From Mizuhopecten yessoensis (taxonomy: Eukaryota): a stretch of 64,000 bases of DNA. Positions 2,274 to 64,000 of this stretch are shown in pieces; the first letter of the stretch is position 1, and each line of letters begins with the position of its first letter. Under the pieces are notes generated by a model. The model saw only the letters and a program-made list of their open reading frames with translations. It did no database searches and was not told the origin of the DNA. The position numbers and the translations under genes were made by a program. Location of the stretch: contig NW_018408491.1 in NCBI RefSeq assembly GCF_002113885.1, positions 190,061-254,060 on the forward strand. Direction: 5' to 3'.

Positions 2274-3917
2274 ATGGAGTCGTTGTGTGAAAAGCTATTT
2301 AAATCGGTATTCATTCTACCATATGTTGCTGGAAATTACCGGAGGCGGCAAAATGGATTCTGGAATTATGACTGTACAATCTCGTCCCGTGTTTTGTTCC
2401 TGATCATCGTCGCTTTAGTGATAGTGTTCACCGCCAGCAAAGAGTTAAAAACTCATGTCGAAGTTCGGTTGGGATTCATCCTGCTTCTCCTGTCAGTTCT
2501 GATGATCTGTACAGTTTTCGCTTTGTGTCGCCTTGGGCGTTTGGTACAGAAACACGGCCTCCAATCCGTTGTTTCTGCAAGAAGACACATAAGCACTCCG
2601 AAGCTTCAGATGATATTCTTGTGGGTTTTTGGACTGGGTTCGGCACTCTATTGTGCCTTATTTGTTGGAAAGCAAATCGAGTGTTCAGCATATTCTTCTG
2701 GAGGATTTTATTGGAATGTTTTGTTGTCTTTCAATATCATATTGATCCTATCGATAATCTCTGAAATGATTTTCCTCACTTACTTTTCACCATATCAGCT
2801 GAAACAGACTTCTGCAGTGAATTTCTCTTCATTTTTTTTATTAACTGCAAATATATCTGTAGTACTGTATATATATCTCATGAAAGATACATTTTTGTAC
2901 GCGATAGAAATCTATCCTGAAGGTCATTTCATATCCTGCATAGAAAGCAACAGTACAATGACTATCCTCATGCATAAATCAAAACAATTTTTGAGCCCAA
3001 CTTTTGTGGAATATGCCTTTTTATCAATAACAGTAGTTGTCGAAATATGGTCACCTACTAAAGTGCACCAACCTGATACCAGATCAGCTCACGAGGGAAT
3101 AAATGACATAGAAAATTCGGAACAGAATTCCTTATTTGATGAATTTGACAATGGGAATTCAGAGCGAAGATCTCTCCTTCATGCAGTTGCCAATGACGAG
3201 TCACAACAGGCATGTCTTCGACAGGCAGCGATCGAACCTTATCATTCCGAAAATGGCGAAAGACGAAAAGTATCCCACATAATAACGCTGGTTGGAAGTT
3301 TAACTGCAGGACTGGGACTTGTCATTTGTTATACAGCACAAGCTATGGATAAAGGAAATATAGAAAATATTCGATACGCCACTGAAATTTATGAATTAAC
3401 ATTAATTGTTGTAATGGTGCTTGTGATCTTTGTTGGATTCTATTGTTTGGTGCATTCCTGTAATCTTGACAGATCAGCTCAACCGTTGCGGCCTGGGGAC
3501 TATGTGTACTTACTGTCAGCATTTGGTGCAATTATGTTTCATATGTATGAAGTGATAGGTGGTGACGTTTCCTCCGATTCGTCCGGTAGTGTCTTTTTGT
3601 TTAAAAGTATCGTAAGCATATTCCAGGATTATCTACAAATTGTGTTTCTACTCCAGGCGAATCGATGTAAGAAATCGCGATCAAGCGTCGTTTTACTTGA
3701 ATCTGTTTTTATATTTACTTCGGTAATTAATCTAATATACTGGTTTAACAACAGTTTTCTTAAAGCTGAATTTCCAAGTACACGCATACTCGAAAATGAC
3801 CACTTTTCTAAGGAAGTGTTGGATTTAGTGTATAAAGTGTTATTACCCGTATTAGTTTTCTTTAGATTCACTTCCTTTTTAGAATTTTATGCAATTTTGG
3901 AGGAATATAAACACTAA
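2274..3917 (+). CDS. Otopetrin-family proton channel-like protein, copy A (547 aa, single coding exon)
   Basis: About 12 hydrophobic segments in two halves. Otopetrin-like motifs: FGLGS..Y, TAN, P..VEY..L...E.W, Q...Q.VFL..A, NL..W..NSF and P...FFRF.S. The start is moved from 2169 to 2274 because a splice acceptor lies 7 nt upstream and paralog B also starts MESLC. Confidence 0.88.
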   Translation: MESLCEKLFKSVFILPYVAGNYRRRQNGFWNYDCTISSRVLFLIIVALVIVFTASKELKTHVEVRLGFILLLLSVLMICTVFALCRLGRLVQKHGLQSVVSARRHISTPKLQMIFLWVFGLGSALYCALFVGKQIECSAYSSGGFYWNVLLSFNIILILSIISEMIFLTYFSPYQLKQTSAVNFSSFFLLTANISVVLYIYLMKDTFLYAIEIYPEGHFISCIESNSTMTILMHKSKQFLSPTFVEYAFLSITVVVEIWSPTKVHQPDTRSAHEGINDIENSEQNSLFDEFDNGNSERRSLLHAVANDESQQACLRQAAIEPYHSENGERRKVSHIITLVGSLTAGLGLVICYTAQAMDKGNIENIRYATEIYELTLIVVMVLVIFVGFYCLVHSCNLDRSAQPLRPGDYVYLLSAFGAIMFHMYEVIGGDVSSDSSGSVFLFKSIVSIFQDYLQIVFLLQANRCKKSRSSVVLLESVFIFTSVINLIYWFNNSFLKAEFPSTRILENDHFSKEVLDLVYKVLLPVLVFFRFTSFLEFYAILEEYKH

Positions 3918-4706
3918 ACATAATGCATGCTAGGATATATTGTATTTTGGAAGCTTTGCGATTACGCGGTGGCCGAAGATACAATGTCTTTGTCGTGTGT
4001 TTCAACAAAATGTGACAAACTGCATTATTCTACTTCAGCTTTATAAAAGCGTGTCTAATTCTGACACTGGCCCCTTAACAAACATCATGTCGCCCTCACG
4101 CGCTCAAGTTTCCCTGATCATATTTTATCTTATTCGGATCCTCTCTAGAAAAAGGGCAAGAGCCACTACAACCTAGTTCCTAATGACGGAAGCACATCTT
4201 AACAATAGCGCGGTAAGCTAAGCATCTCTACTATTGTTTTGTTTTCTTTGTTTTTGTTTCATAGTTTCAAAAGTATAATATTTATCGCCCTTACTTATCG
4301 CCCTGTTTGAAACATGATTAATCAAGGAAACCACAAAATCGGGGTTTCCTGTAGTTGGGGCAATTAATGTATAATATAGATTTTGTATAGAAAAAGACAC
4401 TCGAGATAGAGCTACAGAAAAAAACTTCAATGCATGTATTATGTATGTCTGTAGTTAAAACCGACTCTCAAAAAATGAATAATGCCATTTGAAAATTAAT
4501 TATGATGTATGTCTATCTATAGACAATCAAGTCCGTTTGTGTTAACTGTAAGTACATATAATTAGAATTGCCAAAATGTGAGTCTTGTTCGTCAAAATAT
4601 ATATTCTCACAGAATGAGGTGAATCTGTTTACACAATATATGCATTTGTCTTGCAATGTACGTTTAGTTTTATGACTCGTGTGTTACATCCAAATATATG
4701 TACATA

Positions 4707-5153
4707 GTAATGTATTGTGTACAACTTTATATATAGTTCAATTGATATATTGTGTACAACTGGATGTATGTTTCATTAGTTTTATTGTGTACAACTTTTT
4801 GTATGGTTCATCAGATGAATTGTGTACAACTTTATGTATGGTTCATTAGATGAATTGTGTATAACTTGATGTATAGTTCATTAGATGAATTGTGTACAAC
4901 TTTATGTATGGTTCAATAGATGAATTGTGTACAACTTGGTGTATGGTTCAATAGATGAATTGTGTACAACTCTATCTTTAGTTCAATAGATGTATTGTGT
5001 ACAACTGGATGTATAGTTCATTAGTTTTATTGTGTATAACTTGATGTATAGTTCATTAGATGTATTGTGTATAACTTGATGTATGGTTCAATAGATGTAT
5101 TTTGTACAACTTGATGTATAGTTCAATAGATGTATTGTATTCGTCTTGATGTA
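4707..5153. repeat. 35-bp minisatellite (~12 copies), TGTGTACAACTTTATGTATGGTTCATTAGATGAAT
   Basis: Directly visible tandem array downstream of copy A. Confidence 0.92.
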
Positions 5154-8243: not shown

Positions 8244-9357
8244 TTTAGCTCACCTGCCCGAAGGGCAAGTGAACTTATGTCATGGTCCGTCGTCCGTCCG
8301 TCCTCGTCCGTCAACTTTTCCTTTGAACAACTTCTTCTGAAGAACGGACAGGCCTAAAGTCATGATATTTGTCTGAAAGCTTTGTTGGTAGGACCCCTAC
8401 AAAGTTTGAGAACGAAAATGACCTTGACCTACTTTCAAGGTCACAGGGGTCAAATATGTCAAAATCTTCAAACGACTTCTTCTGAAGAACTAAACGGTAT
8501 AGAATCTTCATATTTGGCTGATGGCTTCCTGGAATGGAGTTTAACAAAGTTGGAGAACGAAAATTACCTTGACCTACTTTCAAGGTCACAGGGGTCAAAT
8601 GTGTCAAACACTTCAAACTACTTCTTCTGAAGAACTGAAAGGTATATAATCTATATATTTGGCTGGTAGCTTCCTTGGATAGTGCCCAACAAAGTTTGAG
8701 AATGAAAATTAGTTTGACCTACTTTCGAGGTCACAGGGGTCAAATATGTCAAATGCTTCCAACGACTTCTCCTGAAGAACTGAAAGATATAGAATCTTTA
8801 TATTTGCTTGATGGCTTTCTGGGATAGAGCCTAACAAAGTTTGAGGATGAAAATGATATTGACCTACTTTCAAGATCACATGGGTCAAATGTGTCAGACA
8901 CTTCAAACGACTTCTTCTGAAGAACTGAAAGGTATAGAAAATTAATAGTTGGCAGGTGGCTTCCTGGGAAAGAGACAAACAAAGTTTGTGAATGAAAATG
9001 ACCTTGACTTACTTTCAAGGTCACAGCAATCAAATATGTCAATTCTGAAGAATTAAAAGGCATACAATTTTAATATATAATATAGTAGCTTTAAGGAATA
9101 GAGCTAACCAATTGGAAAAGGAAAATGACATTGACCTACTTACAAGGTCACAGGGGAAAATATGTCGAGCAACTTCTGAAGAGGAATCAAAAAGCATAGA
9201 ATCTTATAATAATATTTTGCTGGTAGTTTTAACAGATGGAGCCAACAAAGTTTGCGAGGGAAATATTTTTAGTGCAATATAATATTTAATGAGAATATTT
9301 TGCTATGACTGCTTAAATATTCAGGTGAGCGATACAGGCCCTCTTGGGCCTCTTGTT
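8244..9357 (+). mobile_element. Non-autonomous Helentron-type element (HINE/DINE-1-like) with ~6 internal 145-bp tandem repeats
   Basis: 5' TTAGCTCACCTG with a hairpin, then a (GTCC)n microsatellite. GAC(C/T)T anchors at 8426, 8571, 8716, 8861 and 9006 give a period of 145. The 3' subterminal IR CAGGTGAGC is followed by the palindrome AGGCCC-TCTT-GGGCCT, and the flanks are T-rich. Confidence 0.85.
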
Positions 9358-10250: not shown

Positions 10251-11307
10251 TGCCCGTTTCGGAATGACTTAAGTGAGCGTCGATAGCATTTGGCGACATG
10301 AAGTGGCAAAATTTATTTAGATAATAAATCATGTTCGTTTGATTTGTTAAATTTAGGTTTGTGAATGACTAACATCGTGCACTACATTGTAAATATATAT
10401 TTCAAATGAAACGTTATATTTGTGTATCATGTATGCTTTATCATTTAAGCAAAACAACCAACTGCCATAAAAGGTCATACGTATATGTGAGAGATCTGAG
10501 GCAACTCAATTTGTATGGATTATAAATTCCCCATCTTTTATTCTTTTTACTCTTAGCACCAATCATAGATCGTTTTAAGAATGACTTTATATATCTATCC
10601 GTCTATCCTACCACGTCAAAAGGAACTGGTGTTATTTTGTGTCTAACATTGTAGCTATAAAGCGACATGACCTACATAATCATTTTTTATAAATAGTATT
10701 GTCGTCATCATGATCTCATTTGAAAATGTACTATTTCTTTGTGTGAAATGAAGGTCGATGTTTTTTTTATCATGTTAAGTAGTATGTTTCGCTGTGTTGT
10801 TATCATTACTCCTGTTAAAGCTTTGAAAACGTGCCATTACTCGGATTTGACCTAGAACTACATGGAAAGTGTAGTCGATAAAGCAGAAGACGCTGTCTCT
10901 TCTGGGACAACTTCTCTTATTAGCCAATGTCTTTACGTTAAATTTTTTCTTTGTTGGTCTTTTGCCAAAATGTATTCTGAATTCTTATTTTTTTTAGCAA
11001 CAAGACGTGTATGCATATCTTTTCTTGACCCTGAATCAAGTTGTCCTCCTCTGCCATATATACAAATGCTTACGTACTGTCACTAGAAGCGTGACCGTCT
11101 TGATATTGCCAACGTAGAATGATTTAGAATTAGAGGATATCTGAATTGCGATACAAAATACAAATGATCTAACGCTTATATTATCACAATGCACATGAAA
11201 TTAGAACATGTAACTATCGGTATACACAATGATATTACAAATGTTCCAAAATTTTGAATTACAGTTTCGCTGCGTTATAAAATTATCTCATTTATTTTAG
11301 GTTTGAG

Positions 11308-12963
11308 ATGGAGTCGTTGTGTGTTAAACTACTGAAATCAATATTCATTCTGCCATTTTGTGCTGGGAATTTAAGAAGGCGCCGAAATGGATTATGGAAT
11401 TACGACTGTACAATCTCGTCTCGTGTTTTGTTCCTGATCATCGTTGCTGTAGTGATAGTGTTCACCGCCAGCAGAGAGATACAAACACATGTCGAAGTTC
11501 GGTTGGGATTTGTTCTACTCCTCCTCACAGTAATCATGTTAAGTACAATATGTGGCATGTGTCACCTTGGATGGTTGGTACAGAAAGACGGTCTCCTATC
11601 CATCGTTTCCGCTAAACGCGACACAAGAACACCGAAACTTCAAGTGGTATTCCTGTGGGTATTCGGTATCGGGTCTGGACTGTATTGTGCATTATTTGTC
11701 GGGAAACAAATCGAATGTTCAGTACTTACTAATGGAGGATTTTATTGGCATGCTTTATTTTATTTCAATATCTTATTAACTATTTCCATTTTCACGGACT
11801 TGATTTTTCTTTCTTATTTTTCGCCGTTTGAACTAAAACAAACAACTTCAGTTAATTTTGCTATGTTTATTACTTTAACTGCAAATGTAACTGTAATACT
11901 ATATATTTATCTTTTGGATGGTACACTTTTATTTGTGAAAATAATCGACCCTGATGTTCAGTTGATTTCCTGTATAGACAACAACAGTACAATGACAATT
12001 CTTCTAGACAAATCACGACGATTTCTAGCGCCAACTTTTGTTGAGTTCGCCCTTCTATCGACAACATTACTTCTTGATATTTGGTCACTTACTCAAGTTT
12101 ATCATCCTGATAGCGGATCAACTAGCATCGAAATAAATGACAGAGATAATTCGGAACAGACAACCTTTATTCAAAGCGCTGACAATCAGGACTCGGAGCA
12201 GATATGTCTTTTAAGTTCAGTTACATGTACCAATGATGATCCGAATCAAGCATATCGTCAGCATGCAGCGATCGAACCTTATCATTCCGAAAATGGCGAT
12301 AGACGAAAAGTATCACAGATTGTAACCTTGGTTGGCAGCTTAACTGCAGGACTAGGACTTGTCGTTTGTTATACTGCACAAGCCATGGCTATGGAAAACA
12401 TAAAAAACATTCGATACGCAACTGAAATTTATGAATTAACATTAGCAGTTGTAATGGTGCTTGTGATCTTTGTTGGTTTCTTTTGTTTGACTTATTACTG
12501 TACTCCTGACAGATCAGCTAAACATCTGCGGCCTAGTGATTATGTGTACTTACTATCAGCATTTGGTGTAATTATGCTTCATTTCTATGAAGCTTTGGGT
12601 GGTGACGTGTCCTCCGATTCGGCCGGTAGTATTATTCTGTACAGAAGTATAATAAGCCTATTTCAAGATTACCTACAAGTTGTCTTTCTACTCCAGGCGA
12701 ATCGATGTAAGAAATCTCGATCAAGCGTTGATCTGCTTGAATCGGTTCTGATATTTACAATGATAATTAATATAATATTCTGGTTTAACAATAGCTTTCT
12801 TTTAGCTGAATTCCCAAGTACAAGCATACTCGAAAATGATCACTTTTCTAAGGAATTGTTGGGTTTAGTGTATAAAGTTTTGATACCTGTGGCAATATTC
12901 TTTAGATTTACATCTTTTTTAGAATTCTATGCAACATTCGAGAAATATCGTTCTCAGGAATAA
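11308..12963 (+). CDS. Otopetrin-family proton channel-like protein, copy B (551 aa, single coding exon)
   Basis: Intact ORF, colinear with copy A over its whole length, with the same motifs. Confidence 0.9.
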   Translation: MESLCVKLLKSIFILPFCAGNLRRRRNGLWNYDCTISSRVLFLIIVAVVIVFTASREIQTHVEVRLGFVLLLLTVIMLSTICGMCHLGWLVQKDGLLSIVSAKRDTRTPKLQVVFLWVFGIGSGLYCALFVGKQIECSVLTNGGFYWHALFYFNILLTISIFTDLIFLSYFSPFELKQTTSVNFAMFITLTANVTVILYIYLLDGTLLFVKIIDPDVQLISCIDNNSTMTILLDKSRRFLAPTFVEFALLSTTLLLDIWSLTQVYHPDSGSTSIEINDRDNSEQTTFIQSADNQDSEQICLLSSVTCTNDDPNQAYRQHAAIEPYHSENGDRRKVSQIVTLVGSLTAGLGLVVCYTAQAMAMENIKNIRYATEIYELTLAVVMVLVIFVGFFCLTYYCTPDRSAKHLRPSDYVYLLSAFGVIMLHFYEALGGDVSSDSAGSIILYRSIISLFQDYLQVVFLLQANRCKKSRSSVDLLESVLIFTMIINIIFWFNNSFLLAEFPSTSILENDHFSKELLGLVYKVLIPVAIFFRFTSFLEFYATFEKYRSQE

Positions 12964-15856: not shown

Positions 15857-16861
15857 CTTGATTCAAAGTGGTCGACTTCCTTTTTTGACGGCAAGTGGGA
15901 TTTTTTCTTTAAACAGCAAATATGCAATCGATTGTAAAAAAAAACAACATAAATTCGTCACGGGATTCCCCTCATTAGTTAAGGCCCCTCTAAATTTGTA
16001 ATTACATTGTACTCCATTAGGGAGTGCTATTTTGCTTTCGTATCTAAAACCATATTCGTATTTTGCATATACTGTGTTATTATACCATCCATAAAAAGTC
16101 CAGCATTCAGTCAGCACAAAATAAGTAAAATAATGAAATGACTTCCCTAAACGATTTTAAAGGACTCTGCCTATATATGCGATTCTCTATTTTAACATTT
16201 AAATGTAAATGTTCAAGCCTGAATACTTATATTGCATATAACATTCAATCTAACCTTATTAAGATAACTTCACTTCAATGGGCGTTACTACAGGTGGAGT
16301 GGGAGACGTAGCATAGCCTTTTGCAAGTCATGTTCCTGTAAGCATTGATAGCTTCATCATTGAGGTGTTGTGTGAAAAGGGTATTGTCTAAATCATTGCT
16401 ATCTTTACTATACAGCATTACGTGTTCAGTGAAATGTAAGCATTGTCAACTTTGCTACATTGGTACATGTGAACAATGTAACCTTAATTTACATATCCTT
16501 AGTAAGTATATCACTACGCATGCGTGGTTAAGATATTGGATTTCCCAAAGTAAAATTAACTTCCTGTTTCCTTTATTACAATAGAGCAAACGCACTGTGT
16601 GATTTCTAACTTAATAACTAGTTACTTTACTCTATAATGCGGTACATATCTACTAACTAACCACCCACCGACATTGTATGTACACTACATGTAAGACCGT
16701 AGTCAATGACTGGGTCTTCGTAACATGTATACTTAGCGCATCCCCTTCCACGTCATTAAACATATCATACATGAAGTGTTGAAGACCTATATTGTCCTGC
16801 TTATCTGGCGAAGTCTACATAATTAAGGGATTTTTTTTTTTTACTTCTATACAAGGTAAGG
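15857..16861 (+). promoter_or_regulatory. Orphan duplicate of the upstream region and first exon of otopetrin copy D, ending in a splice donor at 16856
   Basis: 15857-16205 aligns patchily with 22669-23335, and 16255-16860 aligns well with 27605-28336. Both end TACAAG|GTAAG. Confidence 0.75.
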
Positions 16862-19285: not shown

Positions 19286-20839
19286 TTATGATGTATATCT
19301 ACCAAATGTTGCGTAGTATTCCATAAAAGAAGTGAATCGAAAGTACATTGACACGGGAAGTAAAACTTGATACATCAAAGGAAATATTTCCTTTGTTAGT
19401 ATGGCATTTGTAAGTATCCGTGTACTGGAAAATTCATAAAGGAGAAAACTATCGTTAAACCAGAGGATAAAGTTGCTTATCATGATAAATATCAGAATTG
19501 ATTCAAGAAAAGCGACATTTGAATGAGGGTCAGATTTTTTACAACGGTTTGCATACATCAAAAATACGACCTGGAGATAGTCTTGGAAAACGCTAAGGAT
19601 GCTTGTAGCCATATATATATTTGCTGAATGATCGGAAGACACATCACCTACTATCCCTTCAAACATATGCATCATGATCATACCAAACGCCGATAGCAAA
19701 TACACATACTCCCGAGATTTCAAACCTTTCGCTGAACTGTCAGGAGTACAGTAATTTACCAAACAAAAGAATCCAGCAAGTATCACTATCATCATTACAA
19801 GTTTTAACGAAAATTCATATGTTACAGCAATGAAGCTAATACTTTCTATTTTTTCTGTGTCCAACGCCATCGCGACGTAACACACAACAAGACCGATACT
19901 TGTTGTTAAACTCACAGCCAGTGTTATCAAATGGCACACCTTCATTTTGCCTTGATTTCCGGAAATCGGATGCTCAACTGATGTGAGATCGTAAGGCAGA
20001 GATATCAACTCCGTAGTCCCTCTCTCCGTGTACGATGATCCTATATCAGAATAATGAATTTCCGTGGGTGACCATATCTCAAGAATTATGGCAGCTGAAA
20101 GAAGACCATGCTCCACAAATGTTGGATCTAAAAATTTCCGTAATTTAACCCTTAGAAAAGTCATTGTAGTATTGTCTTTTAAGCAGGAACTTAAACTCGC
20201 TTCATAGTCAATGTTTATTAAATACGAAATTGTATCGCCCATCAGATAGATGTACAAAATCACAGATATATTAGCGGTTAACAGCAATAGCATAACGTAA
20301 TTCACCAAAATAGTCTGTTTCAGTTTGAATGATGAAAAGTAAGTGATGAAAATCAGTTGTGAAAATAGGCAAAAGATCAATAAGATATTGAACCAAAGTA
20401 ATGCATTCCAATAGAATCCTCCAGAAGAACACTCGATCTGCTTGCCAACAAATAAAGCACAATACAATCCCGATGCCAGACCGAAAACCCACAGGAATAT
20501 CACTTCCAGTTTTGGTGTATTGGAGTTTCGTCTTGCAGCAACAACGGATTGGATGCCTTGTTTCCGAACAAGGCATCCCATAATATAGCTCCCAATCACC
20601 CCAGAGACCATAAGTAATGACAGAAGAATTGTGACAAATCCCAATCGAAGATTCATATGTGTTGGTATCCATTTGGTGGCGGAGAATACTATCACTATTG
20701 AAAGAACGAGCAGGAACAGAACACGGGACGAAATGGTACAATCATAATACCAGGATCCATTCTGTCGTCTTCGGTAATTTCCAGCTGCGAACGGTAGAAT
20801 GAATATTGACGTCAACAGCTTTCCCAACCAGGAATTCAT
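19286..20839 (-). CDS. Otopetrin-family proton channel-like protein, copy C (517 aa, single coding exon)
   Basis: Intact ORF colinear with A and B, with a shorter central loop. The first ATG is at 20839, 13 nt after the acceptor CTTTTAG (20853). AATAAA on the minus strand at 19206-19211. Confidence 0.9.
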   Translation of the reverse strand: MNSWLGKLLTSIFILPFAAGNYRRRQNGSWYYDCTISSRVLFLLVLSIVIVFSATKWIPTHMNLRLGFVTILLSLLMVSGVIGSYIMGCLVRKQGIQSVVAARRNSNTPKLEVIFLWVFGLASGLYCALFVGKQIECSSGGFYWNALLWFNILLIFCLFSQLIFITYFSSFKLKQTILVNYVMLLLLTANISVILYIYLMGDTISYLINIDYEASLSSCLKDNTTMTFLRVKLRKFLDPTFVEHGLLSAAIILEIWSPTEIHYSDIGSSYTERGTTELISLPYDLTSVEHPISGNQGKMKVCHLITLAVSLTTSIGLVVCYVAMALDTEKIESISFIAVTYEFSLKLVMMIVILAGFFCLVNYCTPDSSAKGLKSREYVYLLSAFGMIMMHMFEGIVGDVSSDHSANIYMATSILSVFQDYLQVVFLMYANRCKKSDPHSNVAFLESILIFIMISNFILWFNDSFLLYEFSSTRILTNAILTKEIFPLMYQVLLPVSMYFRFTSFMEYYATFGRYTS

Positions 20840-25439: not shown

Positions 25440-26025
25440 GTTATTCAAAATTAATTTGCCGCAGTTTCAATTACATTCTGTTTCTCACACTCGGTATCTT
25501 TGTTTTTTGGAAGCTGGTAAAAATCTCTGAGTATGTATGATGCAGTTTCTTTGAAGGTTACAATGTTTGCACTACTGTTGATTCCTGTGATTATGACCTA
25601 AGGTCCAAAGTGTTCCTTTAGTTTAGATTTTATGTAAACTGTACTATATGCATCTTCTCCAACAATGGCTCTCATCCTTTCCACGAGGTCGCAAATAGAC
25701 AGTAAATCTGTTTATGCAGGCACTTCACAACCGTCAGGAAAGCGTCAGCTTGGCAATCATTCTTTGGTCTTTCACAAGATTTTCTCTGCTGCTTGGTTGG
25801 AGTAAATGCTACTGGGATATGTTTATGTGTACGGAAATTCACGCTACACAGTTGATGGTATACAGCATCAGCAGCCGGTAAGTCTCTGATAAATTCGAGG
25901 CGTCTTTTAACATCATTTGCCCATTGGTCTTTTCTGTGCTCACACACTTGCTCCACGGTCTTCTGTAATTCCAGAGAGCTCACAGGATAAACATCTTGAC
26001 CTCCTTTCTTATAAGAATGTAAAGA
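25440..26025 (-). pseudogene. Decayed transposon-like ORF fragment (DLPAADAVYHQLCSVNFR motif)
   Basis: The DLxAAxAxYHxxC motif resembles large repeat-encoded proteins of invertebrate genomes (from recall). After a frameshift the reading continues with stops (YSTVYIKSKLKEHFGP*VIITG...). The 5' end abuts a MITE. Confidence 0.55.
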
Positions 26026-26036
26026 CAAAAAAAATC

Positions 26037-26365
26037 ATGAGAAGCATTGCATGTATTCATGAAATATTATATCATTAAATAGTTTTTCAAAATATCATTA
26101 CTTATATTTTCTGATTCAAATCGATTCACTGATATCAAACAATCGATTCACTGATATCATATAATCGATTCCATGATATCATAAAAATGATTCATTGATA
26201 TTATATAATCGATTCACTGAAATCATACAATCGATTCACTGATATCAAACAATCGATTCACTGATATCATATAATCGATTCACTGATATCAAACAATCGA
26301 TTCACTGATATCATACGATAGATTTAATGATATTACATTTTATGAATACATGCAATGCTTCTTAT
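26037..26365. mobile_element. MITE with ~40-bp imperfect TIRs and an internal 22-bp tandem array
   Basis: GAAGCATTGCATGTATTCAT (26041-26060) is the exact reverse complement of 26342-26361. About 9 units of ATCGATTCACTGATATCA(A/T)A(C/T)A lie inside. Confidence 0.85.
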
Positions 26366-26409
26366 TAAAAACTATTCTATTTTAGGAGTGAGTGAGTGAG
26401 TACTCGAGA

Positions 26410-26745
26410 ACTGGGGTTTAACGTCTTCCTAACAACCAGGATCATATGCCGACGGTATTATTGATGCATGATACTTGTAGTATACATGTGCTTTGGACTG
26501 CTTGTCATGGCGCGATTTCAGGCCGTCTTTATAGTGCCAGCTCACTGTAAGAACAGTGACGCATGTACCCCACCCAGACACATTATACTGATTCAAGTCA
26601 GGCTAGTCGTTGCGCTATCCCCTTAATGACAACAGTTTTGCAGGGATGCCACAACTACCAAATTTATGTCTTTGGTATAACATTGTACGCGTCCGGGATT
26701 GAACCCCACCCCCCACCCCTCCGACTCAGAAGCGAACGCTATCTT
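26410..26745 (-). mobile_element. Diverged tRNA-derived SINE (Meta-like)
   Basis: Contains GGGTTTAACGTC (tail), CACATTATACTGA, GTCTTTGGTAT and CGGGATTGAACCC (B box). Confidence 0.65.
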
Positions 26746-27604
26746 TTTTTTAGGAAAATGACCACATGTACTATATAAATTATCAAATGATATCACAAAA
26801 TCGAATTCATTATATCATGAAAAAATCACGTAGAACAAGCAATTTTCATGTTTTTAATACAAAAAATATAAACTGCGATTTTTCAATTTCATCGTTATAT
26901 TGCAGGTGTGGGCTTCCATAGTTTTTTTTCTCGGTCAAATTGCCGTTCAATAGACAAGCAAATATTTTGTCTAATGTGTAAAACAAAACATTTTCTATAA
27001 ATTCAGGTGAACACTGCCTTCCCAGTAGTTTGAAATCAGCAAATATTCAAATACCAAACGATTCTTACACTGCCCTGGTATATTTATGAATATGACTGTA
27101 TGCTGTCGAGCAATGACGTAGCACTAGCAGACGACGGAAAATGTAAATTCGTAACGGATCAAAATGTTCATGTTTTGATCATACATAAGCATCTATATAT
27201 GATGTATCTATTAGTTCACTGACCATTAGTAGTGAAACAATCCGCGGAAAAAGATGTACGCTGAAAATAACGGCGTTCTTCTGTTTATCTCATTTCACCA
27301 TAGTTCGTGTATTACCTCCCCTAAGGAACTCTTTCGTGTGACGTTGGCCCGTACAGGCCATACATTCATTTGCTAAATCAACAATTTTCATCACAAAATT
27401 TGAATATTTCCCATCGTTAGAATTTTCTAGATTTTTTATATGTTGTTTAAACACGTCTCTTATATATTCTCAACTAATAATATTTTCTGTTGCAATTGGT
27501 TTGAGGTGAAACCATAGAATGACTAGACTATTAGGATCATGAGGTATAATCAACTTATAATTGTGGTTAAATGATAAATTCTAGGTGTTGGGAAATGGGA
27601 GGGT

Positions 27605-28337
27605 GCTTATTAAGATGACTAAACTTCACTGGGTGTACCTACATGTGGAGTGGGATGTGTAGTATAGCCTTTTACAGGTCGGGTTACTGTAAGCATTGGT
27701 AGCTTAATTATTGAGGTGTTGTGTGAAAAGTGTAATGTGTAAAGCAATGCTATCTTCATTATACAGCGTTTCGTGTTCAGTGACATGTTACCATTGTCAA
27801 CTTTATTACATTGGTACATGTGAGTAATGTGAACCTTAAATCAAAGTAAATTCTATCTCTGTGAAGGGAGATTTAGACCGGTTATGGAGTAAAGGTGAAG
27901 CTAAACTACTATTTATATTGCTGCATGACTTCCTTCCATTGCATAAAACTTAAACGGGTTTGTCTCTATGTGTGGCCTTTCATGCTAAATATAGCTTTAT
28001 GTCATTCTTTTATAAACTGTATTCTTATTACATGCGTGGTTAAGATGTTGGATTTTCCAGAGTAATATTCACTTCCTGTTACACCTTTTACAGTATAGCA
28101 AATGCACTGTATGGTTTATATTTTTAAATGTAGTTTCCTTTCAATACGTTACGTGTCTACTTAATAGCCACCGACAGTGTATGATGACTGGTTCTGTGTA
28201 ATATGTATACGTAGCGCATTTCCTTACACTAGCATAAAAATATCATACATGAAGTGTTGAAGACCTCTATTGCCCTAGTTATCTGGCGAACAATTCAGGA
28301 TACTGACTCAATTGTTTTTCTTCAGTACAAGGTAAGT
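27605..28337 (+). promoter_or_regulatory. Promoter region and non-coding first exon of otopetrin copy D, donor at 28332
   Basis: CATAAAAA (TATA-like) at 28233 and CAAG|GTAAGT followed by (AT)n. The acceptor TTTTTCAG is at 30066-30073. The region is conserved with 16255-16860. Confidence 0.6.
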
Positions 28338-30103
28338 TGGGGTAAGTTATATATATATATATATATATATATGATTCATTTTATAGTTTCACAAATTTCA
28401 AAAATAATAATAAGAAAATGTTTCCGTTAATTGTCAAATTGAGAAGAATAGTTAAAAGCAAATTGTAATTGATTTATTCATGACACAAAACTAAAATTGA
28501 AATCATTTTAAGAAAGTTTACTTTATATAGATTTTACCGTAACGGTCCATAACTCTACTCTTGCTTTGATATCAAGCTTTAGTACACACATACTTAAGAA
28601 TCCCGTGCAGTCGTTTGTCAATCAACCAATTTGACAGAACCTCTGAACGAGGTTTAAGACAATCACAGAAATGCAAAATCGACAGTCAAATTACAAAATC
28701 TTTTCATCGACGATGATATTTAAAAACACTCAAAAATGCTCCTATTTACTGTATTGTATTCCTGGCGTATATTACCTGTATTACAGTGATTGTGTATACA
28801 CAATGTAAACTATATGTACGAAAGCGAGGTAAACGTGATTGATATAAGATATGCTTGTGTCGAATATTGATGGTATTTGTAAAATGTTTCAGGACATGCA
28901 CCAGGAAGATCTATCATTGGGAGACTGTCCCATAAATGACATCTGTAAAGCAAGGATTCAATGTGTTAGTTTTGTAACTTGAGTTTGAATTACTGAAATT
29001 AGTAAAAAAAAAAAAAAAAAAAGTAAACACATCAATATTAGAAATACCTAGAGCTACACGGAACAAAAATTTACAAACACATTTACCAAGCTGTGCTCTT
29101 AATAGCAATGTAAAACTTAGTAATAAGAAATGAAAATAATTTCAAACATTTCCTATATTTTAAAATATTGAAAATAACGAAAAACATTTTTCAATAAACG
29201 AACTCTCTTTATCTTAAAAAGACCACTTTTAATCATATGAGAAGTCCGTACTCGTAAACATGCATACTCCTTCAATGAGTACTCGTCTCAGCTTCACCGT
29301 CACTAAGTAGAGTACTCCTAACGACTGAATGCTGTTCTAGCTGCAGTCGAGTACCGAACACTTTCTCGGACACTTCCTAAGTGAGCCGGCTCAATGATAA
29401 GGTACATTATGTCATACTCACGAAGAGCCAACATACATACGGGAGAATTGAAGCCTTACACGGGCACATCTACTTTCGTGTCTGTTCTACAGTAAAGTGA
29501 GTTAACACCCTCATTCTTATTAAAACATTTCTATACTCTTAATATATCATTTAACTTTTTGTCCTCCAAGACCTATGGCCCCAAATACTTGTGATAAGTC
29601 CGCTGACTTCGGTCGTCTGCCTTTCAAGATTACCCAACAAAGCAATTTCCGAGTAGTGTTAATAGAACTTTATCCAGAACTCTTGATAAACATTCACTCT
29701 GAAATGGTATATTTGACTGCCGTGTTAGTCGATGACTGGGTGTGGGACGGTTCACTAAGAGACTGTATTTTGCTGTGTATTATTATGTGCTGACACTGTG
29801 ATATTTGTCATACTTTATACCTTAATTATTATAATTAGATGCATTGAATTTGGAGGTAGATTCATACATTTCTTCATATATTCCGTTTTTAACAAAAACA
29901 GCTATATCTGTCACTACCTATATACTATTTAGAGGACAAATAATATGTTCAAATGGGGGAAAATTCGTCATATAAGCTTACGAAATAGTTTCGTATTTCA
30001 ACGTTGTATTAAATACATATCAAGAAATACTGAAAAGATACCTTTTTATATCAGATCTTATGTAATTTTTCAGTGTCCATCAACCGAACGGTTTTCTATC
30101 GGA

Positions 30104-31720: not shown

Positions 31721-31914
31721 GTTGCCATTGTGTATGCAACTAATTGCCTAGATGTTTATTGTTACTATAAACTATATATTTAGAGGACGGAAATGCCATA
31801 TGGTGATGGAAAATGTTAGCTTTTTTTGCTTTTTACATGTACACTTTTAAAACGTGCTTCCTACTTCGCTGTTTAAGTAACTATGATTTTGAAATATGAT
31901 GATTATGAAAGCTT

Positions 31915-34728: not shown

Positions 34729-35295
34729 CTGAAAAATACAAAAAAAAATATATAAATAAAAGCCACATCTATGTATCTATAATATACAGGTGTTTTTTCA
34801 TGATTATAACTTTCTTTGTCTTATGTTCCTACATCTGAAATTCAAATTATTATTTCACAATTTTTTATTATAAGAATAATGATGATCTACCAAAAGCATT
34901 CCATTGCTTGCCAAATTACTAATAACATGAATACAGTTGTTTTTCAATGCGTACGATAAGGTTCTGTTTTTGAACCCAAAGGAGCCTGAAATTCTGTCAA
35001 AAAAATGATTATAACAGTGCTCCGGTGCTTGAACCGTACACATATCTGAATCAGCAACTCTTAGTCTACGGCAGTACCAGGAACAATCATACTACCAAAC
35101 TCACTGAATTTGGCCAGCAAGTAAGGAAGTTATTAGGCCTCAAAATTGTTTGATGAAATATTGTCACTTTTTTTCTGTACGAATATTTCATGCTACATAA
35201 TGTACACAAAAGAGTTAAACTTGTCCAGATTAACAAGATTTAAGCATACAGTTACAAAGAAATATATATGAATGGTATTTTTTAGATTTACTTAC

Positions 35296-35764
35296 ATTGC
35301 CAATTCTTTTTAACGAATTCGCCTCCTCTACCGACTAAGTAATCCAAGGTTTCTGGTACGCCTGGTCGAGGGTCAACATAATAGGGGTCAAATCCGCCGG
35401 AAAATCCCATGACGCTTTCTCCATATCCATGATAAGGACGTGGCATTACTGGAGGATACTGTCCACCTGGAGCTCCGACATTCGGACTACCATAACCATT
35501 GAACCGTTTACCACCGTAGTTGTGATTTACAATTTTCTTTGGACCATTGAACATGGGAGCTGGTTTGTGAGCTTGGTACTGGAAGAAGTTTCCCGCCAAA
35601 TGGATGTTGTTAGGATACAGTCCAATAGCACCGTGTCGGTGTAATGAGGGTTCGCTGTTCCAGAATTGGTTCACTGGTCCCTTGTTCCCGCCATTACCGT
35701 AACCATCGCCGAAAACTGCCACGCAAAAACAGGCGAATACTCCGATAGCCAAAATATTTTTCAT
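35296..35764 (-). CDS. Main coding exon of a secreted low-complexity Gly/Pro/Tyr/Asn-rich protein (171 aa if spliced, 158 aa if read through to 35288)
   Basis: Signal peptide MKNILAIGVFACFCVAVFG|D, GC content above the flanks, GYG/NGG/YPP motifs, and upstream TATA and CCAAT boxes. Confidence 0.85.
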
Positions 35765-35883
35765 ATTTCTGCAGTGATATGAAAAGAAATAAATATAATC
35801 CAAATGGTTAGCGTTAACTGTTACTACTACTCAGTGGAACTATGAGCCGATGTGTTCTGCTGGTGTTGACATTGCAGAATGTC

Positions 35884-44314: not shown

Positions 44315-45694
44315 TTAGCTCACCTGGCCCAAAGGGCCAAGTGAGCTTATGGCATGGTGCGGCGTCCGTCATCCGTCCCTCATCCGACGTCTGTCCGGCG
44401 TCAACCTTTTACTTTAAACAACTTCTTCTCAGTAGCCAAAAGGCCTAGGGTGATGATATTTGGCCAGAAGCATGCTTGGATGAAGGGCTACCAAGTTTGT
44501 TCAAATACATGACCTTCATCAATTTTAAAGGTCACAGGGGTCAAATATGTTAAAATCTTTAAACAACTTCTTCTGAATAACCAATTAAAGAAGCCTAGGA
44601 TGATGATATTTGGCCAGTAACATGCTTGGATGAAGGGCTTCCAAGTTTGTTCAAATGACCTTGCCTTATATTTAAGATCACAGGGGTCAAATATGTTAAA
44701 ATCTTTTAAACAACTTCTTCTGAATAACCGAGAGGCCTAGGGTTATGATATTTGACCAGTAACATGCCTGGATGAAGGGCTACCAAGTTTGTTCAAATAA
44801 ATGATCTTGACTTATATCTAAGGTCACAGGGGTCAAATATGTTAAAAACATTTAAACAACTTTTTCTGAATAACCGAGAGGCCTAGGGTGATGATACTTG
44901 GGCAGTAATATGCTTGGATGAAGGGCTACCAAGTTTGTTCAAATAAATGACCTTGACTTATATTCAAGGACTCAGAGGGCAAATATGTTTGAAATATTTA
45001 AACAACTTTTGAATAACCAATAGGCCTAGGGTGATGATATTTGGCTAGTAGCATGCTGGGATGAAGGGCTATAAAGTTTGTTCAAATGAATGACCTTCAT
45101 CTTTTTTCAAGGTCACAGGATCAAATATGTTCTTAACCTTTAAACAACTTCTTCTGAATAAACAAGAGGCCTAGGATAATGCCAGTAACATGCTGGGATG
45201 AAGGGCTACTAAGTTCAAATGAATGACCATGACATATATATTTTAAGGTCACAGAGGTCAAATATTTTTAAAACCATTGAATGACTTCTTAATAAGCAAA
45301 AGGCCAAGGGTGATGATACATGTATATTTGGCCAGTAACATGCTGGGATGAAGGACTACCAAGTGAATGACCTTCGCCCATATTCAAGGTTACAGTGGTC
45401 AATATATGTTTAAATCTTTAAATGATTTGTTCTGTATAACCAGAAGGTCCAGGGCAATGATATTTTTCCAGAAGCATGCTGGGTTGGAAGACTATAAACT
45501 CTGTTCAACCTAATATTATAATGTCCTTGTTCGACATTCAAGGTCACAGGTGTCATATGTTTATACATCTTTTAATAGGTTCTTATGAATGAAACACTGA
45601 TATTTTGCCTGTAGCTGTATTTTAGTCCACTTTTAAGATTACAAGTGTGAGATTAATACCAGGTGAGCGATGCAGGCCCATTGGGCCTCTTGTT
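44315..45694 (+). mobile_element. Non-autonomous Helentron-type element (HINE) with ~8 internal ~146-bp repeats, in VKOR intron 2
   Basis: TTAGCTCACCTGGCCCAAAGGGCCAAGTGAGC start, (GTCC)n-like tract, AAGGTCACAGGGGTCAAATATG monomers, and end CAGGTGAGCGATGCAGGCCCATTGGGCCTCTTGTT. Confidence 0.87.
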
Positions 45695-56855: not shown

Positions 56856-57191
56856 TTACAGTTTGTTCTGCATAGAAAACTTACTTCTAACTCGGTATAC
56901 AATTTGATGTGCTTCCTCCAGCACGGAATCAATATTTGCCCTGACCCTATCTACCCATGTTTTTATTACGGGATTTGATTCATAGAGTTTCTCCTCACAA
57001 CATGTGATAAGCTGCATCAGCTCACAGACACAAAGAAGATCGGCGATGGATATATCGCTCCCACACAAAAACGGCTTATCGTCTTTCAGGAAGTAACTGG
57101 CAAGGTGAGAGACTGTCCCTCGTACCTGGTTCCTTTCATTCTCAACTAAGTGCCATTGTATCGGAGCCTTGTTCATTGTAGGTAATCTTAC
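56856..57191 (-). CDS. GSTT: Glutathione S-transferase theta class, exon 4 (terminal)
   Basis: FLKDDKPFLCGSDISIADLLCVCELMQ...WVDRV..EEAH..V, ending in NKL*. Confidence 0.93.
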   Translation of the reverse strand, partial: VRLPTMNKAPIQWHLVENERNQVRGTVSHLASYFLKDDKPFLCGSDISIADLLCVCELMQLITCCEEKLYESNPVIKTWVDRVRANIDSVLEEAHQIVYRVRSKFSMQNKL

Positions 57192-57704
57192 CTGTAAGAT
57201 ACAGAATAAACAAAGTTGGAATACAACACCTGTAAGTAAGAGATAAATGTACGCCACATAATATATTACTGGTGTATTGTCAGGTGAGGCTAAAACCTGT
57301 GGTTGTACCTTGGTAATTTGGCAATGCCTTAAAAAATTACATTTTATTACACAGCTTTTTTATGCTTTCAGGATTCCTCGATGTACAAATTGTTTTTAAC
57401 TACTGCTGAAACAGATGGTAATTATGTACCACTCTTTAATTACATGAATTTCAAAAACTACAAGAGTACCGGGTATTTTCAAATTAATATTGTATAAAGT
57501 GTGCATTTCATCAAATGTGCAACAAATTAAAAGTGACCACTATGACTAACAAGGATACAGTAAAACGTACAACTGTTTTGATAGATGTTACGCATTGGTA
57601 CCACTGCAAAAAGCTACCTATTTATCACTTCGTACCTAGATACTGTTAAGATGAAGGGAGAAGAGGAAATAACATGCCTATTGAATATATATACCCAAAG
57701 GTTC

Positions 57705-60074: not shown

Positions 60075-61656
60075 CTGTAATATTAGATACACATGTGAGG
60101 ATGTGATATTTATTGGATTTAACCTACATTTACATGGCGGATGTCGTCGTTGAAGAAGGAAACGCTTACCCTTCCTCAATGCCTGGTCGTATCCGTCTTG
60201 TTTTCGTTAAAGGGTCTCCTACTTGTGAATATTTTTTTTGTTCACATTTGGCATTATTTTTCATCGATTTTGCGTTTGACCTATGGTTCTGTTGACACTT
60301 GTGGCGTTTTGTATGTAATATTGTCAGCGAGACGAAATTTGTTGAAAGGGAAGAATAATTATCCAAATCCAAATCCAAACAGTGGATCTTCTTAATGTAA
60401 GTAATTTAGTAATCTTAGTAATTTGCTTAAGATAAATGGTATGGTGATTACTATAAGTGAAAATAAAACAAACAAAAAACAAAACTCGTTTGCCGTTTGT
60501 TGTTAAATAACAAAACGTTTAATTTGAAGCTTATTGATATAGTAAATAAACGATAAAATACTTTTTTTGTCAAATGTCGCTATTTAAAATGTGTAAAATA
60601 GTGAGTTATTTTATTGGTGTTATTTTTTCCCCAATTAATACCACCAGTGAAATTAAACAACCTGTTATAGTTGTCAGGTACATGTGAGTAGTTAACCGAC
60701 CTACTGTGAATCTGAAAACTATTTCGTCGTTAGTTCACTTATCTATGAAATGTTGTCATTTGTGACGCTGATAGAAAGTTTACGACCGGAAAACTAACCA
60801 CAACGTTTTTTTCCCTTAAAAAATGACATATACATTGTAAATGATGATTAGCAGGGAATTATTTTAAAATCGGTAGGTAAAATACGTTTTTCATCAATGT
60901 ATTGACTTTTGACTTAAGTCACAGCGTAGATACATGTAATTTTATGAAATGGACTTGTGTTCATCCACACAATTAAATCACGTGGCCACATCATAACAAA
61001 ATCAGGATGAACGGCGTGCTCATGTTATCATGTACAGTATAAAGATCGAGTGTTAGCTTATATGACCAAAAATAGATAATTTCTATAACATTTGGTTATA
61101 TATATATCAAGTGGTATAACACTATGTGAACTTATCTAAACATACATTGATCATTTCTATAACATTTGCTTTCATATACAAATGTATTTGTGTTTTGTGT
61201 GTGTAATATTGTCAGAAAAACGAAATTACCTGTCGTTAATCTAACAATACTTTAAACCACTAAGGTCAGAGATATTAGTGTAATTTAGTGTATAACTTAC
61301 TTGAAACGTACTTGACCTAACGCCTCCAAGATGAAAAATTACATGTTTCCCAATTCAACTCATAGAAAAACATCAGTTGACCATAATTACATCACCAATA
61401 TATTTATTTGGTAACATCAGTGATTTTATGCATTCACAGGAGAAAAATAAAATATAAAATTGTCTCGGCTTATATTAAGCTTACAAAGCATTATAAACAA
61501 ATTAGTGTATGCGGTTCAAAAGATAGAACTCAAATTTGCTAGAGTTATATATTCAATACGTAATTAAGGGGAGGTAACTGTATATACGAAAAGCAAGCGT
61601 GCAGTGGGACAGAGGTCCTTGATGAGAAACAAATGAATGATCTATCGATTCCTCAC

Positions 61657-61768
61657 CATTCCTTAATGCAACAGGTTTGGCTGTAAACGAAATGTTGTTG
61701 ATCTGCAGAAAAATGTAGACAGCGCGTGACGGCTGGGACATCAAATCGTAGTAGAGGGTTAACGCCAT
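61657..61768 (-). CDS. GSTT: GST theta, exon 1 (112 bp, total protein 229 aa)
   Basis: MALTLYYDLMSQPSRAVYIF contains the catalytic Ser (SQPS). Donor G|GTGAGG. Confidence 0.95.
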
Positions 61769-63583
61769 GTTATCACTAGGCTAAACGAGGCTTGATAGGA
61801 CAATGTTTACTATGTGTTTCTGACCTTATTTTTTATTAGTGGTTTCACGTATTGTTAGCTTAATGATAGGTAACTAAGATAAAACAGGAAGAAGTGTTTA
61901 ATTCCTTTTCAGTTACTCGTTAAGGATATTATAGTAAATATAATATTCTGTCAGAAAAGGAGCTTTCATTTTTCATCTTGAATATGTTAGATCAAGTGTA
62001 TAATTCACCTGACCTCACGTCTTCAAGATGCATGTTTTACGATAATTAGCCTTCGGCTACAATCTAACCGAGGAGATATGCGATAACATCAGCATAAGTT
62101 ATAACTGGTTTTCTGTAATGGGCTATACTTTATGTTGTAGTATTGTACAACTGTATCATAGTGACTGTTTATCTTTGTTATCTGTTATGATATTTGATTG
62201 CTGATGTTTCAGTCTTAATAAAAGGGTCGGATTGTCATAAAAAAAATTACAAATTAATTTATCTGCACTGACGTTTATACTTCTTTGCTTATATATATAT
62301 TAAATATGTCCAACGAACATTTCTTTGATCGGATCTAGTTACCATATACTGGATCGAAGTGTCGTTAATACTTATTTATGTTAATACAATACAGCGGAAG
62401 GATTAAAAAAACCTTATATAAATCACAAGAAAAACCCTATCATTGAGGTTTCATATTTTATTTAAAATTATTTACTGATCAGTTGTAACATATTTTTTTT
62501 TATTAAACAAGCAGGGTATTTGTTCAGTTCACTCCTTGCAGTAGTGGAAAAGTATATATAAAAATAGGGGGAATGAAAATGTAGTTATTTATATGCGCAT
62601 TATTATTTACAAATAAGCGATATACAGGAAGCAATTCAAGAATTTTGAATACAAAATATATGTTCATTCACCCATAGGGAACTAGATTCCGGATTGTACT
62701 AGGATTTCTAAAGCGTGAATAAAATAGCACAAAAACATATGCTAATATCAAGAACCTGTTATCAACTTCTTGATTTGCAATATATATCAAGTATCAAATC
62801 TCTGTATATAGCGCAGCATAAAATCCGATTTTCTAAGAAAATTACACTCTACTTATCAAAGAAAAACGTAAAATTTGGGCAATGGTAGGTGACAGGAAAC
62901 ACGAGGCATGTCACAAAGTGGGTGTGTCAAGGTAAAATAAGATCCTTGAATCTGTATGAAGGAGAGATGAGGCCCAATTTTATTTCGCGGCACTGAACAT
63001 TCCGTATAGTTTTTCTTATACAAAATTGGGCAAACATTGCTGACATGGTGTATGATAATTGCCCCCAGAAAAGTGATGCGGAGACATCCAACATCCGACA
63101 TCCACTTCGGATAGTCAATGTCAACTCTTTTGAACCCTATAGCATATTGAATGTTGGTCAAGGTAGTTTATTTAAAAAAACATTGAAAGCCCTTTAACCC
63201 CTAATGATATACGGGAAATGACGTTTTTATCCTAGGCGGCCTGATTCAACATATATGGAAAAAACTAGTATGAAGAATAGAACAAATATTAACATATGTT
63301 ATTCAAGATCACTTTCTAATCAAATTCCATATCTTCCAGGATGCAGTTTAAATGTCTAATATCATAACATTGAACCTCATGCTTCATAAAAAGAAGATAT
63401 GTAACATCGGAAGACTCGTCACGGCTTACGTTTACAGACACCTCATGGAATGAGCGTTTCTAAAATGTTTGAACGTGAATACTCCCTACTTTTGTCGCCA
63501 GTTTATATCTGAATAAATGTAATTGTTGAAAATATAATCCATATCCAACCATTTTTTTTTTTTTTTTGCATTTGAATAATTAG

Positions 63584-64000
63584 TTATTGCATTTTCAAAG
63601 ACCTGTACTGCTTAAAGGTTGCAAAATATTCCAAAAACGAAGTGAATCTAAAGAAAACTGACACAGGTAGTAAAACGCTATATGCCAAACTCAACACTCC
63701 CTTTGAAAACTGCTCTTGTTTCAATACTCGTGTACTTTGAAATTCCTCGAGGATAAATCTATCACTAATCCAGAAGATAAAGTTGCCCACGAAGATAAAA
63801 ATCAGTACTGAATCAAGCAGAGTAATCTGTGAGCGTGCGCAAGATTTTCTACATCGATTAGCGTGAAGTAGGAACACAACTTGAAGATAGTCCTGGAATA
63901 TTGATAATATGCTTGTGCACAGAAGACAACCAGAAAAGACATCTGAAGAGATGCTACCTGCAATGGCCTCACAAATGTGCAACATGATCATACAACATGC
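63584..64000 (-). CDS. Otopetrin-family protein, copy E, C-terminal part (5' end beyond the window)
   Basis: The frame is open to the window edge. SIFQDYLQVVFLLHANRC, NFIFWISD and LPVSVFFRFTSFLEY match copies A-C. Confidence 0.88.
   Translation of the reverse strand, partial: ACCMIMLHICEAIAGSISSDVFSGCLLCTSILSIFQDYLQVVFLLHANRCRKSCARSQITLLDSVLIFIFVGNFIFWISDRFILEEFQSTRVLKQEQFSKGVLSLAYSVLLPVSVFFRFTSFLEYFATFKQYRSLKMQ

Follow-up and report, generated by a model that had tools for sequence, protein, structure and literature searches.

Single-coding-exon otopetrin-like genes without the transmembrane helix 12 histidine form a tandem array in the scallop Mizuhopecten yessoensis

Structural work on canonical otopetrins (OTOPs; vertebrate OTOP1-3 and C. 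elegans OTOP8, PDB 6nf4, 6nf6, 6o84 and 8ug4-8uga) treats a glutamate in transmembrane helix 6 (TM6) and a histidine in TM12 as an invariant relay. Both residues have been called absolutely conserved, the proton being passed between them, and an aspartate in TM9 pairs with the TM12 histidine (PMC11343839). In Xenopus OTOP3, replacing the glutamate with glutamine, or the histidine with alanine or glutamine, abolishes function in each case (PMC11343839). Gln-Asn-Tyr triads line both OTOP barrels (10.1101/542308). Here we describe an array of otopetrin-like genes of the scallop Mizuhopecten yessoensis that keep the glutamate and have lost the histidine. They lie in a stretch of 64,000 nucleotides, scaffold C5164:190061-254060, which we call the window; feature positions follow window numbering unless C5164 is given. 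Compared with canonical OTOPs, the scallop family has one coding exon where those have several, and dozens of tandem copies where those number three to eight genes.

The window contains four complete otopetrin genes, each a single open reading frame (ORF), named O1 to O4, and the 3' end of a fifth, O5. The automatic ORF list gave four long ORFs of 519-591 codons at 2169/2274-3917 (+), 11308-12963 (+), 19286-20839 (-) and 29945/30104-31720 (+). We place the single-exon coding sequences (CDS) of O1 at 2274-3917 (+; 547 aa + stop), of O2 at 11308-12963 (+; 551 aa + stop), of O3 at 19286-20839 (-; 517 aa + stop) and of O4 at 30104-31720 (+; 538 aa + stop). O5 enters at 63584-64000 (-), with its stop at 63584-63586 and a tblastn match at 63599-64000; its full ORF of 526 codons extends outside the window to C5164:255224. 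The orientation +, +, -, +, - and the intact state of every frame, both described in a preliminary description of this locus, were borne out by the ORF list and by tblastn. Beyond these four loci and the partial O5, tblastn with the window proteins found no more otopetrin fragments in the window. In pairwise comparison, the proteins of O1 and O2 are 69% identical, either one is 52-56% identical to O3, and O4 is 35-37% identical to the rest.

The otopetrin identity given in the preliminary description was supported by sequence and by predicted structure. All four complete proteins exceeded the cut-off of Pfam PF03189 (Otopetrin), set at 27.8 bits, with scores of 69 (O1), 61 (O2), 51 (O3) and 96 bits (O4), although the match spans profile positions 151-434 only. 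A profile built from 21 family members covered both halves of chicken OTOP3 (E 3e-18) and aligned with mouse OTOP2 and zebrafish OTOP1 as well. The AlphaFold2 model of O4 (mean predicted local distance difference test, pLDDT, 79.5; predicted template modelling score, pTM, 0.78) shows 12 long helices, with disorder in the linker between TM6 and TM7 (residues 270-318). Foldseek searches with this model returned all twelve OTOP PDB entries as the top 12, at probability 1.0, and VIA-align gave Z scores of 16-19.8 to OTOP structures over residues 61-534, the next unrelated fold reaching 10.2. The ESM Atlas model had a template modelling score of 0.76 to an arthropod OtopLc-like cluster. As modelled, the family thus consists of 12-helix otopetrin-fold proteins, which share with canonical OTOPs the Pfam domain, the twelve helices and the two homologous halves, at 14-19% identity to the solved structures.

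We then mapped the relay residues through HMMER alignments to OTOPs and the family alignment. The TM6 Pro-x3-Glu motif is kept in O1-O5 (P250 and E254 in O4, the proline one turn above the glutamate); among 21 family members the glutamate is invariant and the proline nearly so. As in canonical OTOPs, TM9 carries an acidic residue, glutamate or aspartate in O1-O5 (E396 in O4, aligned to D369 of mouse OTOP2, mOTOP2; the residue is D439 in C. elegans OTOP8, CeOTOP8), the TM12 proline and arginine are retained, and the C-barrel triad keeps its glutamine and asparagine. The tyrosine of the C-barrel triad is phenylalanine. The N-barrel triad differs by paralog: its asparagine is kept, its glutamine is Glu, Asp or Gln, and its tyrosine is Phe, Tyr or His, so that the tyrosine of both triads is mostly phenylalanine in the scallop family. 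The TM12 histidine (mOTOP2 H551, CeOTOP8 H567, zebrafish OTOP1 H574) is replaced by threonine in O1, O2, O3 and O5 and by serine in O4. It is lost throughout a 40-row clade around the window genes, and in other single-exon groups of the scallop the site is occupied by Ala, Glu or Phe, whereas canonical scallop OTOPs, oyster relatives and fly proteins possess it. This replacement makes a plain proton-channel function doubtful. A different histidine occurs in TM9 of O1-O5, 14 residues past the acidic residue (H410 in O4). Among 145 scorable relatives it is present, by raw counts, in 34/100 of those without the TM12 histidine versus 3/45 of those with it. Elsewhere in the superfamily, in unnamed transcripts, the TM6 glutamate is lost as well (Gln in P0031, P0038, P0044 and P0058; Ala in P0025 and P0027), and these parts are thus without both relay residues.

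From these data we lean, with little better than even confidence, towards an old array of single-exon OTOP-like genes that goes back to one intron loss and whose products serve modified conduction or sensing rather than bulk proton export. A second interpretation, that the proteins have the otopetrin fold and do not conduct at all, acting as regulatory or dominant-negative partners that form dimers with canonical OTOPs, or having given up channel function for a role as membrane scaffold or lipid binder, seems doubtful to us. It would account for the disappearance of the proton-accepting histidine from the entire 40-row clade, and the related clades with glutamine or alanine in place of the TM6 glutamate indicate that the fold persists without the relay. 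OTOPs are moreover obligate dimers, and the dimer interface regulates their activity (PMC11343839). However, the TM6 proline and glutamate, the TM9 acidic residue and the TM12 proline and arginine are invariant or nearly so in pectinid copies, which argues that the relay core is still selected.

The preliminary description had also proposed uninterrupted coding sequences behind an intron in the 5' untranslated region (UTR), with an acceptor 7-30 nt before the ATG and a distant non-coding first exon. For O4, RNA allowed direct observation of this structure. In run X10, an RNA library on record and the basis for the O4 splice, contig 8 links 28142-28331 to 30074-30097, with the splice sites at GT 28332 and AG 30072-73, a two-base ambiguity being allowed. 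This defines a non-coding exon 1 with a minimum extent of 28142-28331 (+), a GT...AG intron of 1742 nt at 28332-30073 (+), which has zero depth in X10, and an exon 2 at 30074-31720 (+), comprising 30 nt of 5'UTR and the coding sequence. Genome and contig 9 (1894 nt) are colinear between 30072 and 31799, the O4 stop included, and the contig continues for at least 162 nt more. Exon 1 is non-coding, since its in-frame stop at 28230-28232 is followed by no in-frame ATG, and the start is therefore 30104. The upstream ATG at 29945 was rejected as the O4 start, being intronic according to the RNA. We also counted words of the 6-kb stretch 25800-31799 in public reads; in 14 runs from 7 studies their share was 0.29-0.39, as expected if only the mRNA of about 2 kb is present from this stretch. 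O4 is therefore transcribed, and spliced as predicted. Run X1 was set aside as O4 evidence, its depth in the intron and upstream carrying many mismatches and probably coming from repeats or DNA.

In O1, O2, O3 and O5, both the acceptor and the far-off first exon are predicted, with indirect support from RefSeq models, so that this part of the preliminary description holds by RNA for O4 and as a prediction from sequence for the other copies. The predicted acceptor AG lies at 2265-2266 for O1, 11299-11300 for O2 and 20854-20853 for O3; counted before the ATG, the acceptor distances are -7 (O1), -7 (O2), -13 (O3) and -30 (O4). All single-ORF copies in the alignment have a start methionine in common, next to which stands a strongly conserved N-terminal motif, Pro-Phe-Thr-Ala-Gly-Asn. 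As this methionine aligns across all copies, the upstream ATG at 2169 was rejected as the O1 start. A pyrimidine tract and AG are found 7-32 nt 5' of the conserved ATG in 23/23 single-ORF copies, that is, in all those genome-wide where the conserved start could be placed, the distant C4827 and C5510 subclades included. The 5'UTR intron is thus ancestral to the family. Two RefSeq models use such acceptors. In P0005, 19 additional residues stand at the N-terminus, their junction falling exactly on the -13 acceptor of the gene; the upstream coding exon that they imply was not found within 1.5 kb. P0010 (LOC110460135 isoform X2, "uncharacterized protein LOC110460135") is 100% identical to O3 from residue 19 and, in the RefSeq model, uses a second acceptor inside codons 18-19.

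Two further observations concern the surroundings of O4. Between O2 and O3, the segment 16255-16860 is a partial copy of the O4 first-exon region and is followed by no otopetrin ORF. Identity is 84% between 16255-16487 and 27606-27839, and 70% between 16519-16860 and 28031-28336, the last of these covering the exon 1 verified by RNA. At 31914-32798, starting about 200 nt past the O4 stop, lies a tandem repeat of a 31-nt unit in about 29 copies (85% match). Since the O4 RNA contig reaches about 162 nt past 31799, the 3'UTR of O4 enters this repeat.

The preliminary description counted at least five genes. Four complete and one partial stand in the window, and the number was understated for the scaffold and the genome. 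Whole-genome searches with the Pfam model and a window-protein profile revealed about 15 loci over 215 kb of C5164 (48-265 kb). Full-length open frames are present in 10 of them, including copies outside the window at C5164:48610, 139313, 157922 and 166438; the others have stops, frame changes or are fragments. Broken copies on C5164 occupy 61026-62485, 75242-76804 (one TGA), 132123-134846 (many stops), 147930-149491, 168743-169157 and 263275-264841. Genome-wide there are about 25-30 single-exon copies, beside four canonical multi-exon OTOPs. Further single-exon groups reside on C5554, C696 and C4651, and more distant single-ORF groups on C4827 (a trio), C5510 (a pair, with a near-identical copy on C81948), C76689 and C5302. 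These results show that repeated tandem duplication enlarged the family while some of its copies decayed, and uphold, through the genome-wide count and the C5164 array, the proposed expansion by duplication in a shelled mollusc.

Sequence divergence was measured as nonsynonymous (dN) and synonymous (dS) substitutions and their ratio (ω) by the Nei-Gojobori method, dN/dS among paralogs being a check named in the preliminary description. O1 and O2 gave a dN of 0.18, a dS of 0.59 and an ω of 0.31. O3 compared with its two nearest copies gave a dS of 0.25-0.31 and an ω of 0.32-0.42, while all other window pairs had a dS above 1 or saturated, at which ω is not reliable. According to these dS values, the array is not a recent burst. 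Across pairs with dS below 0.6, ω was 0.27-0.42. For regional values, eight young pairs were pooled, with the topology taken from the O4 model and the termini set as cytosolic, as in solved OTOPs. We obtained an ω of 0.25 for the N-terminus, 0.30 for the transmembrane helices, 0.62 for the extracellular loops and 0.80 for the TM6-7 linker. The intact copies are under purifying but relaxed selection, with an ω of about 0.3 overall. Extracellular loops of OTOP1 have been implicated in proton sensing (PMC9585144). The faster change of the loops, as calculated from the sequences, would be compatible with diversified gating and is no proof of it.

These values bear on whether the genes are merely decaying retrocopies, or annotation artefacts, without function. 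We regard this as very improbable. It would agree with the intronless CDS and with the several same-scaffold copies that carry stops or frameshifts (all the broken copies listed above except 168743-169157). Five intact ORFs of 517-551 codons nevertheless persist at dS values from 0.6 to above 1, with an ω of about 0.3 and a conserved splice acceptor; the spliced O4 RNA, whose junction argues against genomic contamination, and the counterparts in four other scallop species are likewise at odds with it.

They bear as well on a possible role in calcification. The pH-handling toolkit for calcification put forward in the preliminary description is weakened by the threonine or serine at the TM12 histidine site in the window genes. 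Under this explanation, the products would be ordinary proton channels for acid-base handling during calcification, in mantle, larval shell field or haemocytes, the threonine or serine being tolerated and the many copies providing dosage or tissue-specific expression; we judge it unlikely. The OTOP fold with its central glutamate, the TM9 acidic residue and the C-domain glutamine and asparagine are indeed kept. An otopetrin is reported to be active in sea-urchin calcifying cells (PMC13000164), and otopetrin-domain mRNAs occur in invertebrate mineralising tissues and haemocytes (PMC2268672). On the other hand, the TM12 histidine, essential in Xenopus OTOP3, is missing from every window copy, and the genome already holds four canonical OTOPs that have it. 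An ω of about 0.3, reaching 0.6 in the extracellular loops, together with decayed copies, is unusual for housekeeping ion transport. The missing histidine, the four intact canonical OTOPs and the birth-and-death pattern together argue against a plain proton-export toolkit, and are a somewhat better fit to a sensor repertoire or to regulatory subunits.

The four canonical scallop OTOPs (C5592, C4526, C2776 and C1345) belong to the same genome and the same Pfam family as the array. They differ from it in their multi-exon CDS, whose exons are matched one after another by the profile (204-275 bits for the last exon by itself), in keeping the TM12 histidine, and in grouping with insect OtopL proteins. 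The contrast with multi-exon OTOPs drawn in the preliminary description is therefore found within a single genome. In word-based protein searches, which gave 10-11 hits each under a limit of 8000 candidates, the closest proteins listed came from scallops, and this is no argument for absence elsewhere. An exhaustive profile search for relatives retrieved 1208 cluster representatives at E ≤ 0.001, 108 of them at E ≤ 1e-30. In a FastTree phylogeny of 150 full-length rows, the window genes fall within a 22-row clade (100*) with two parts. In the O4 group each scallop species (Pecten maximus, Ylistrum balloti, Argopecten irradians) is represented once or twice, and the O1/O2/O3/O5 group includes Ylistrum and Argopecten proteins; altogether, four other scallop species have counterparts of the family. 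An Argopecten pair is closest to O1 and O2, which are sisters of each other. From these groupings, the youngest duplications are species-level while the subclades are pectinid-wide.

The array had also been called lineage-specific. This is right for the youngest duplications and wrong for the subclades, which recur in Pecten, Argopecten and Ylistrum, and single-coding-exon relatives occur in oysters. The 40-row clade around the window genes comprises scallop-named or unnamed sequences only, the oyster proteins falling outside. Most relatives in the trees are unnamed transcripts, and gene structure was examined in bivalves. The Pecten maximus counterpart of O4 has a single-exon CDS, and so does the Crassostrea virginica gene for a "proton channel OtopLc-like" protein (LOC111133628), a single CDS of 1593 nt on a chromosome. 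The oyster OtopLc-like or uncharacterized genes (LOC111133628 and Saccostrea LOC134253668) resemble the scallop family in the N-terminal Pro-Phe-Thr-Ala-Gly-Asn motif and in their length of about 530 aa. They differ in keeping the TM12 histidine and lacking the TM9 histidine, and at the oyster locus examined (Crassostrea virginica) there is no tandem array within ±10 kb. In a maximum-likelihood tree of C-terminal halves, which is unrooted, the four canonical scallop OTOPs join a fly protein (100*), and the single-exon scallop and oyster genes all lie across a 96* branch from the multi-exon genes. These results show that the window genes are part of an old clade of OTOP-like genes with a single coding exon, which includes oyster genes and stands apart from canonical OTOPs. 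The oyster relatives imply that the intronless state predates Pectinidae.

We infer that all coding introns were lost once, in an ancient event that preceded the divergence of scallops and oysters. Its simplest cause would be the retroposition of an OTOP mRNA, at a site which could provide the 5' exon, as the preliminary description had supposed. As in a retrogene, the O4 CDS is without introns, as its colinear RNA shows, and canonical OTOPs of the same genome are multi-exon. Retroposition is plausible because the single-exon genes stand together on one side of the 96* branch, apart from the multi-exon genes. With a rootless tree and data from bivalves it is no more than plausible; at this age, with dS saturated, a poly(A) remnant and target-site duplications are expected to have been erased. 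A preprint on the earthworm reported 20 otopetrin-domain transcripts, nine without BLAST homologues (10.1101/2023.04.12.536649), so large and divergent otopetrin repertoires may be general in lophotrochozoans.

If the array is, as we favour, an old single-exon family with modified conduction or sensing, it could work as follows. The proteins probably retain the OTOP-type assembly into double-barrel dimers, and a proton is probably still bound at the buried TM6 glutamate (E254 in O4, with P250 one turn above). As the histidine acceptor in TM12 is now threonine or serine, proton exit would be rerouted or conduction would be weak. A new route might run through water and hydroxyl groups or via the clade-specific TM9 histidine (H410 in O4). 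With their faster-changing extracellular loops, the paralogs could then form a repertoire of differently tuned sensors for acid, base or small ligands.

Vertebrate T2R bitter receptors have a single coding exon and lie in tandem arrays, with pseudogenes among intact copies and a moderate ω that is faster in extracellular parts. The scallop array resembles them in its single coding exon, mixed-orientation tandem arrangement, pseudogenes, moderate ω and faster extracellular parts. This is an analogy of evolutionary mode only: the folds are unrelated, T2Rs being G protein-coupled receptors and otopetrins channels. The chemosensory-like reading, the other option of the preliminary description, would fit the evolutionary pattern. 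A bolder form of it, which we hold to be distinctly unlikely, is that the genes represent an undescribed bivalve class of otopetrin-fold sensors whose relay was rewired from the TM12 histidine to the one in TM9 or to a water/hydroxyl path. Tandem duplication would have made of them a chemosensory-type repertoire, tuned by way of the extracellular loops to pH, CO2/bicarbonate, ammonium or other small ligands. If this were true, otopetrins would be a second channel family, beside ionotropic receptors, to have been recruited as expanded invertebrate chemoreceptors.

Several points weigh against an old single-exon array with modified conduction or sensing. The mechanism is the least certain part of our account; conduction, selectivity and gating are all things that we infer. 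When superposed on solved OTOPs, the O4 model shows a root mean square deviation of about 14-16 Å and a template modelling score of 0.3-0.4. Given this high deviation, the barrel-to-barrel placement in the model, and with it the position of H410, is unreliable. A link between loss of the TM12 histidine and presence of the TM9 histidine was unsupported in an independent-pairs test, which takes relatedness into account and had almost no informative pairs (median p = 1), and several relatives lack both histidines (C4651 and the C4827 trio). As this test was without power, we do not claim the TM9 histidine as compensation for the lost one. The trees being unrooted, the choice between intron loss and gain rests on parsimony. 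The RNA check covered O4 alone. Among the raw-read RNA runs, X20 had no O4 reads, and in X23 the reads were partial, repeat-like and confined to 27400-27599; with about 19% of each run read, both were called uninformative.

NCBI and UniRef contain the proteins of O1-O4 in exact form, on a scaffold of 277,097 nt, and five Mizuhopecten yessoensis RefSeq proteins are 100% identical to ORFs of the genome. Their names are "uncharacterized protein LOC..." in RefSeq and, for relatives on other scaffolds, "Otopetrin-2" in UniRef. In the library searched, no paper on otopetrins of molluscs or bivalves, or on intronless otopetrins, proved relevant, and none described the family. The genes are annotated in RefSeq and unnamed. 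The clade is large, with dozens of copies in one scallop and counterparts in at least four other scallop species, and it combines a kept glutamate, a lost histidine, purifying selection and at least one transcribed member. Such a clade could tell whether the histidine is indispensable for conduction or whether the otopetrin fold allows another route or function. How bivalves sense acid, base or chemicals is largely unknown; the family may be part of that machinery, which matters for their responses to ocean acidification.

Other features lie in the remainder of the window. A minus-strand ORF at 35291-35803 had no Pfam match. Another minus-strand ORF, at 56859-57257, matches glutathione S-transferase (GST) C-terminal domains (PF00043, 24.5 bits) and is probably one exon of a GST-like gene between O4 and O5, so that the otopetrin array would have at least one unrelated gene in its midst. 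Two arrays, at 8326-9042 (4.9 copies) and 44413-45364 (6.6 copies), are built from related units of about 145 nt and are about 68% identical to each other; they probably represent satellite DNA or the tandem portion of a mobile element. There is one N in the window, at 37178. Finally, 28601-29265, in the 5'UTR intron of O4, and 33441-34062, downstream of O4, form an inverted pair with 67% identity and are probably two copies of an interspersed repeat.

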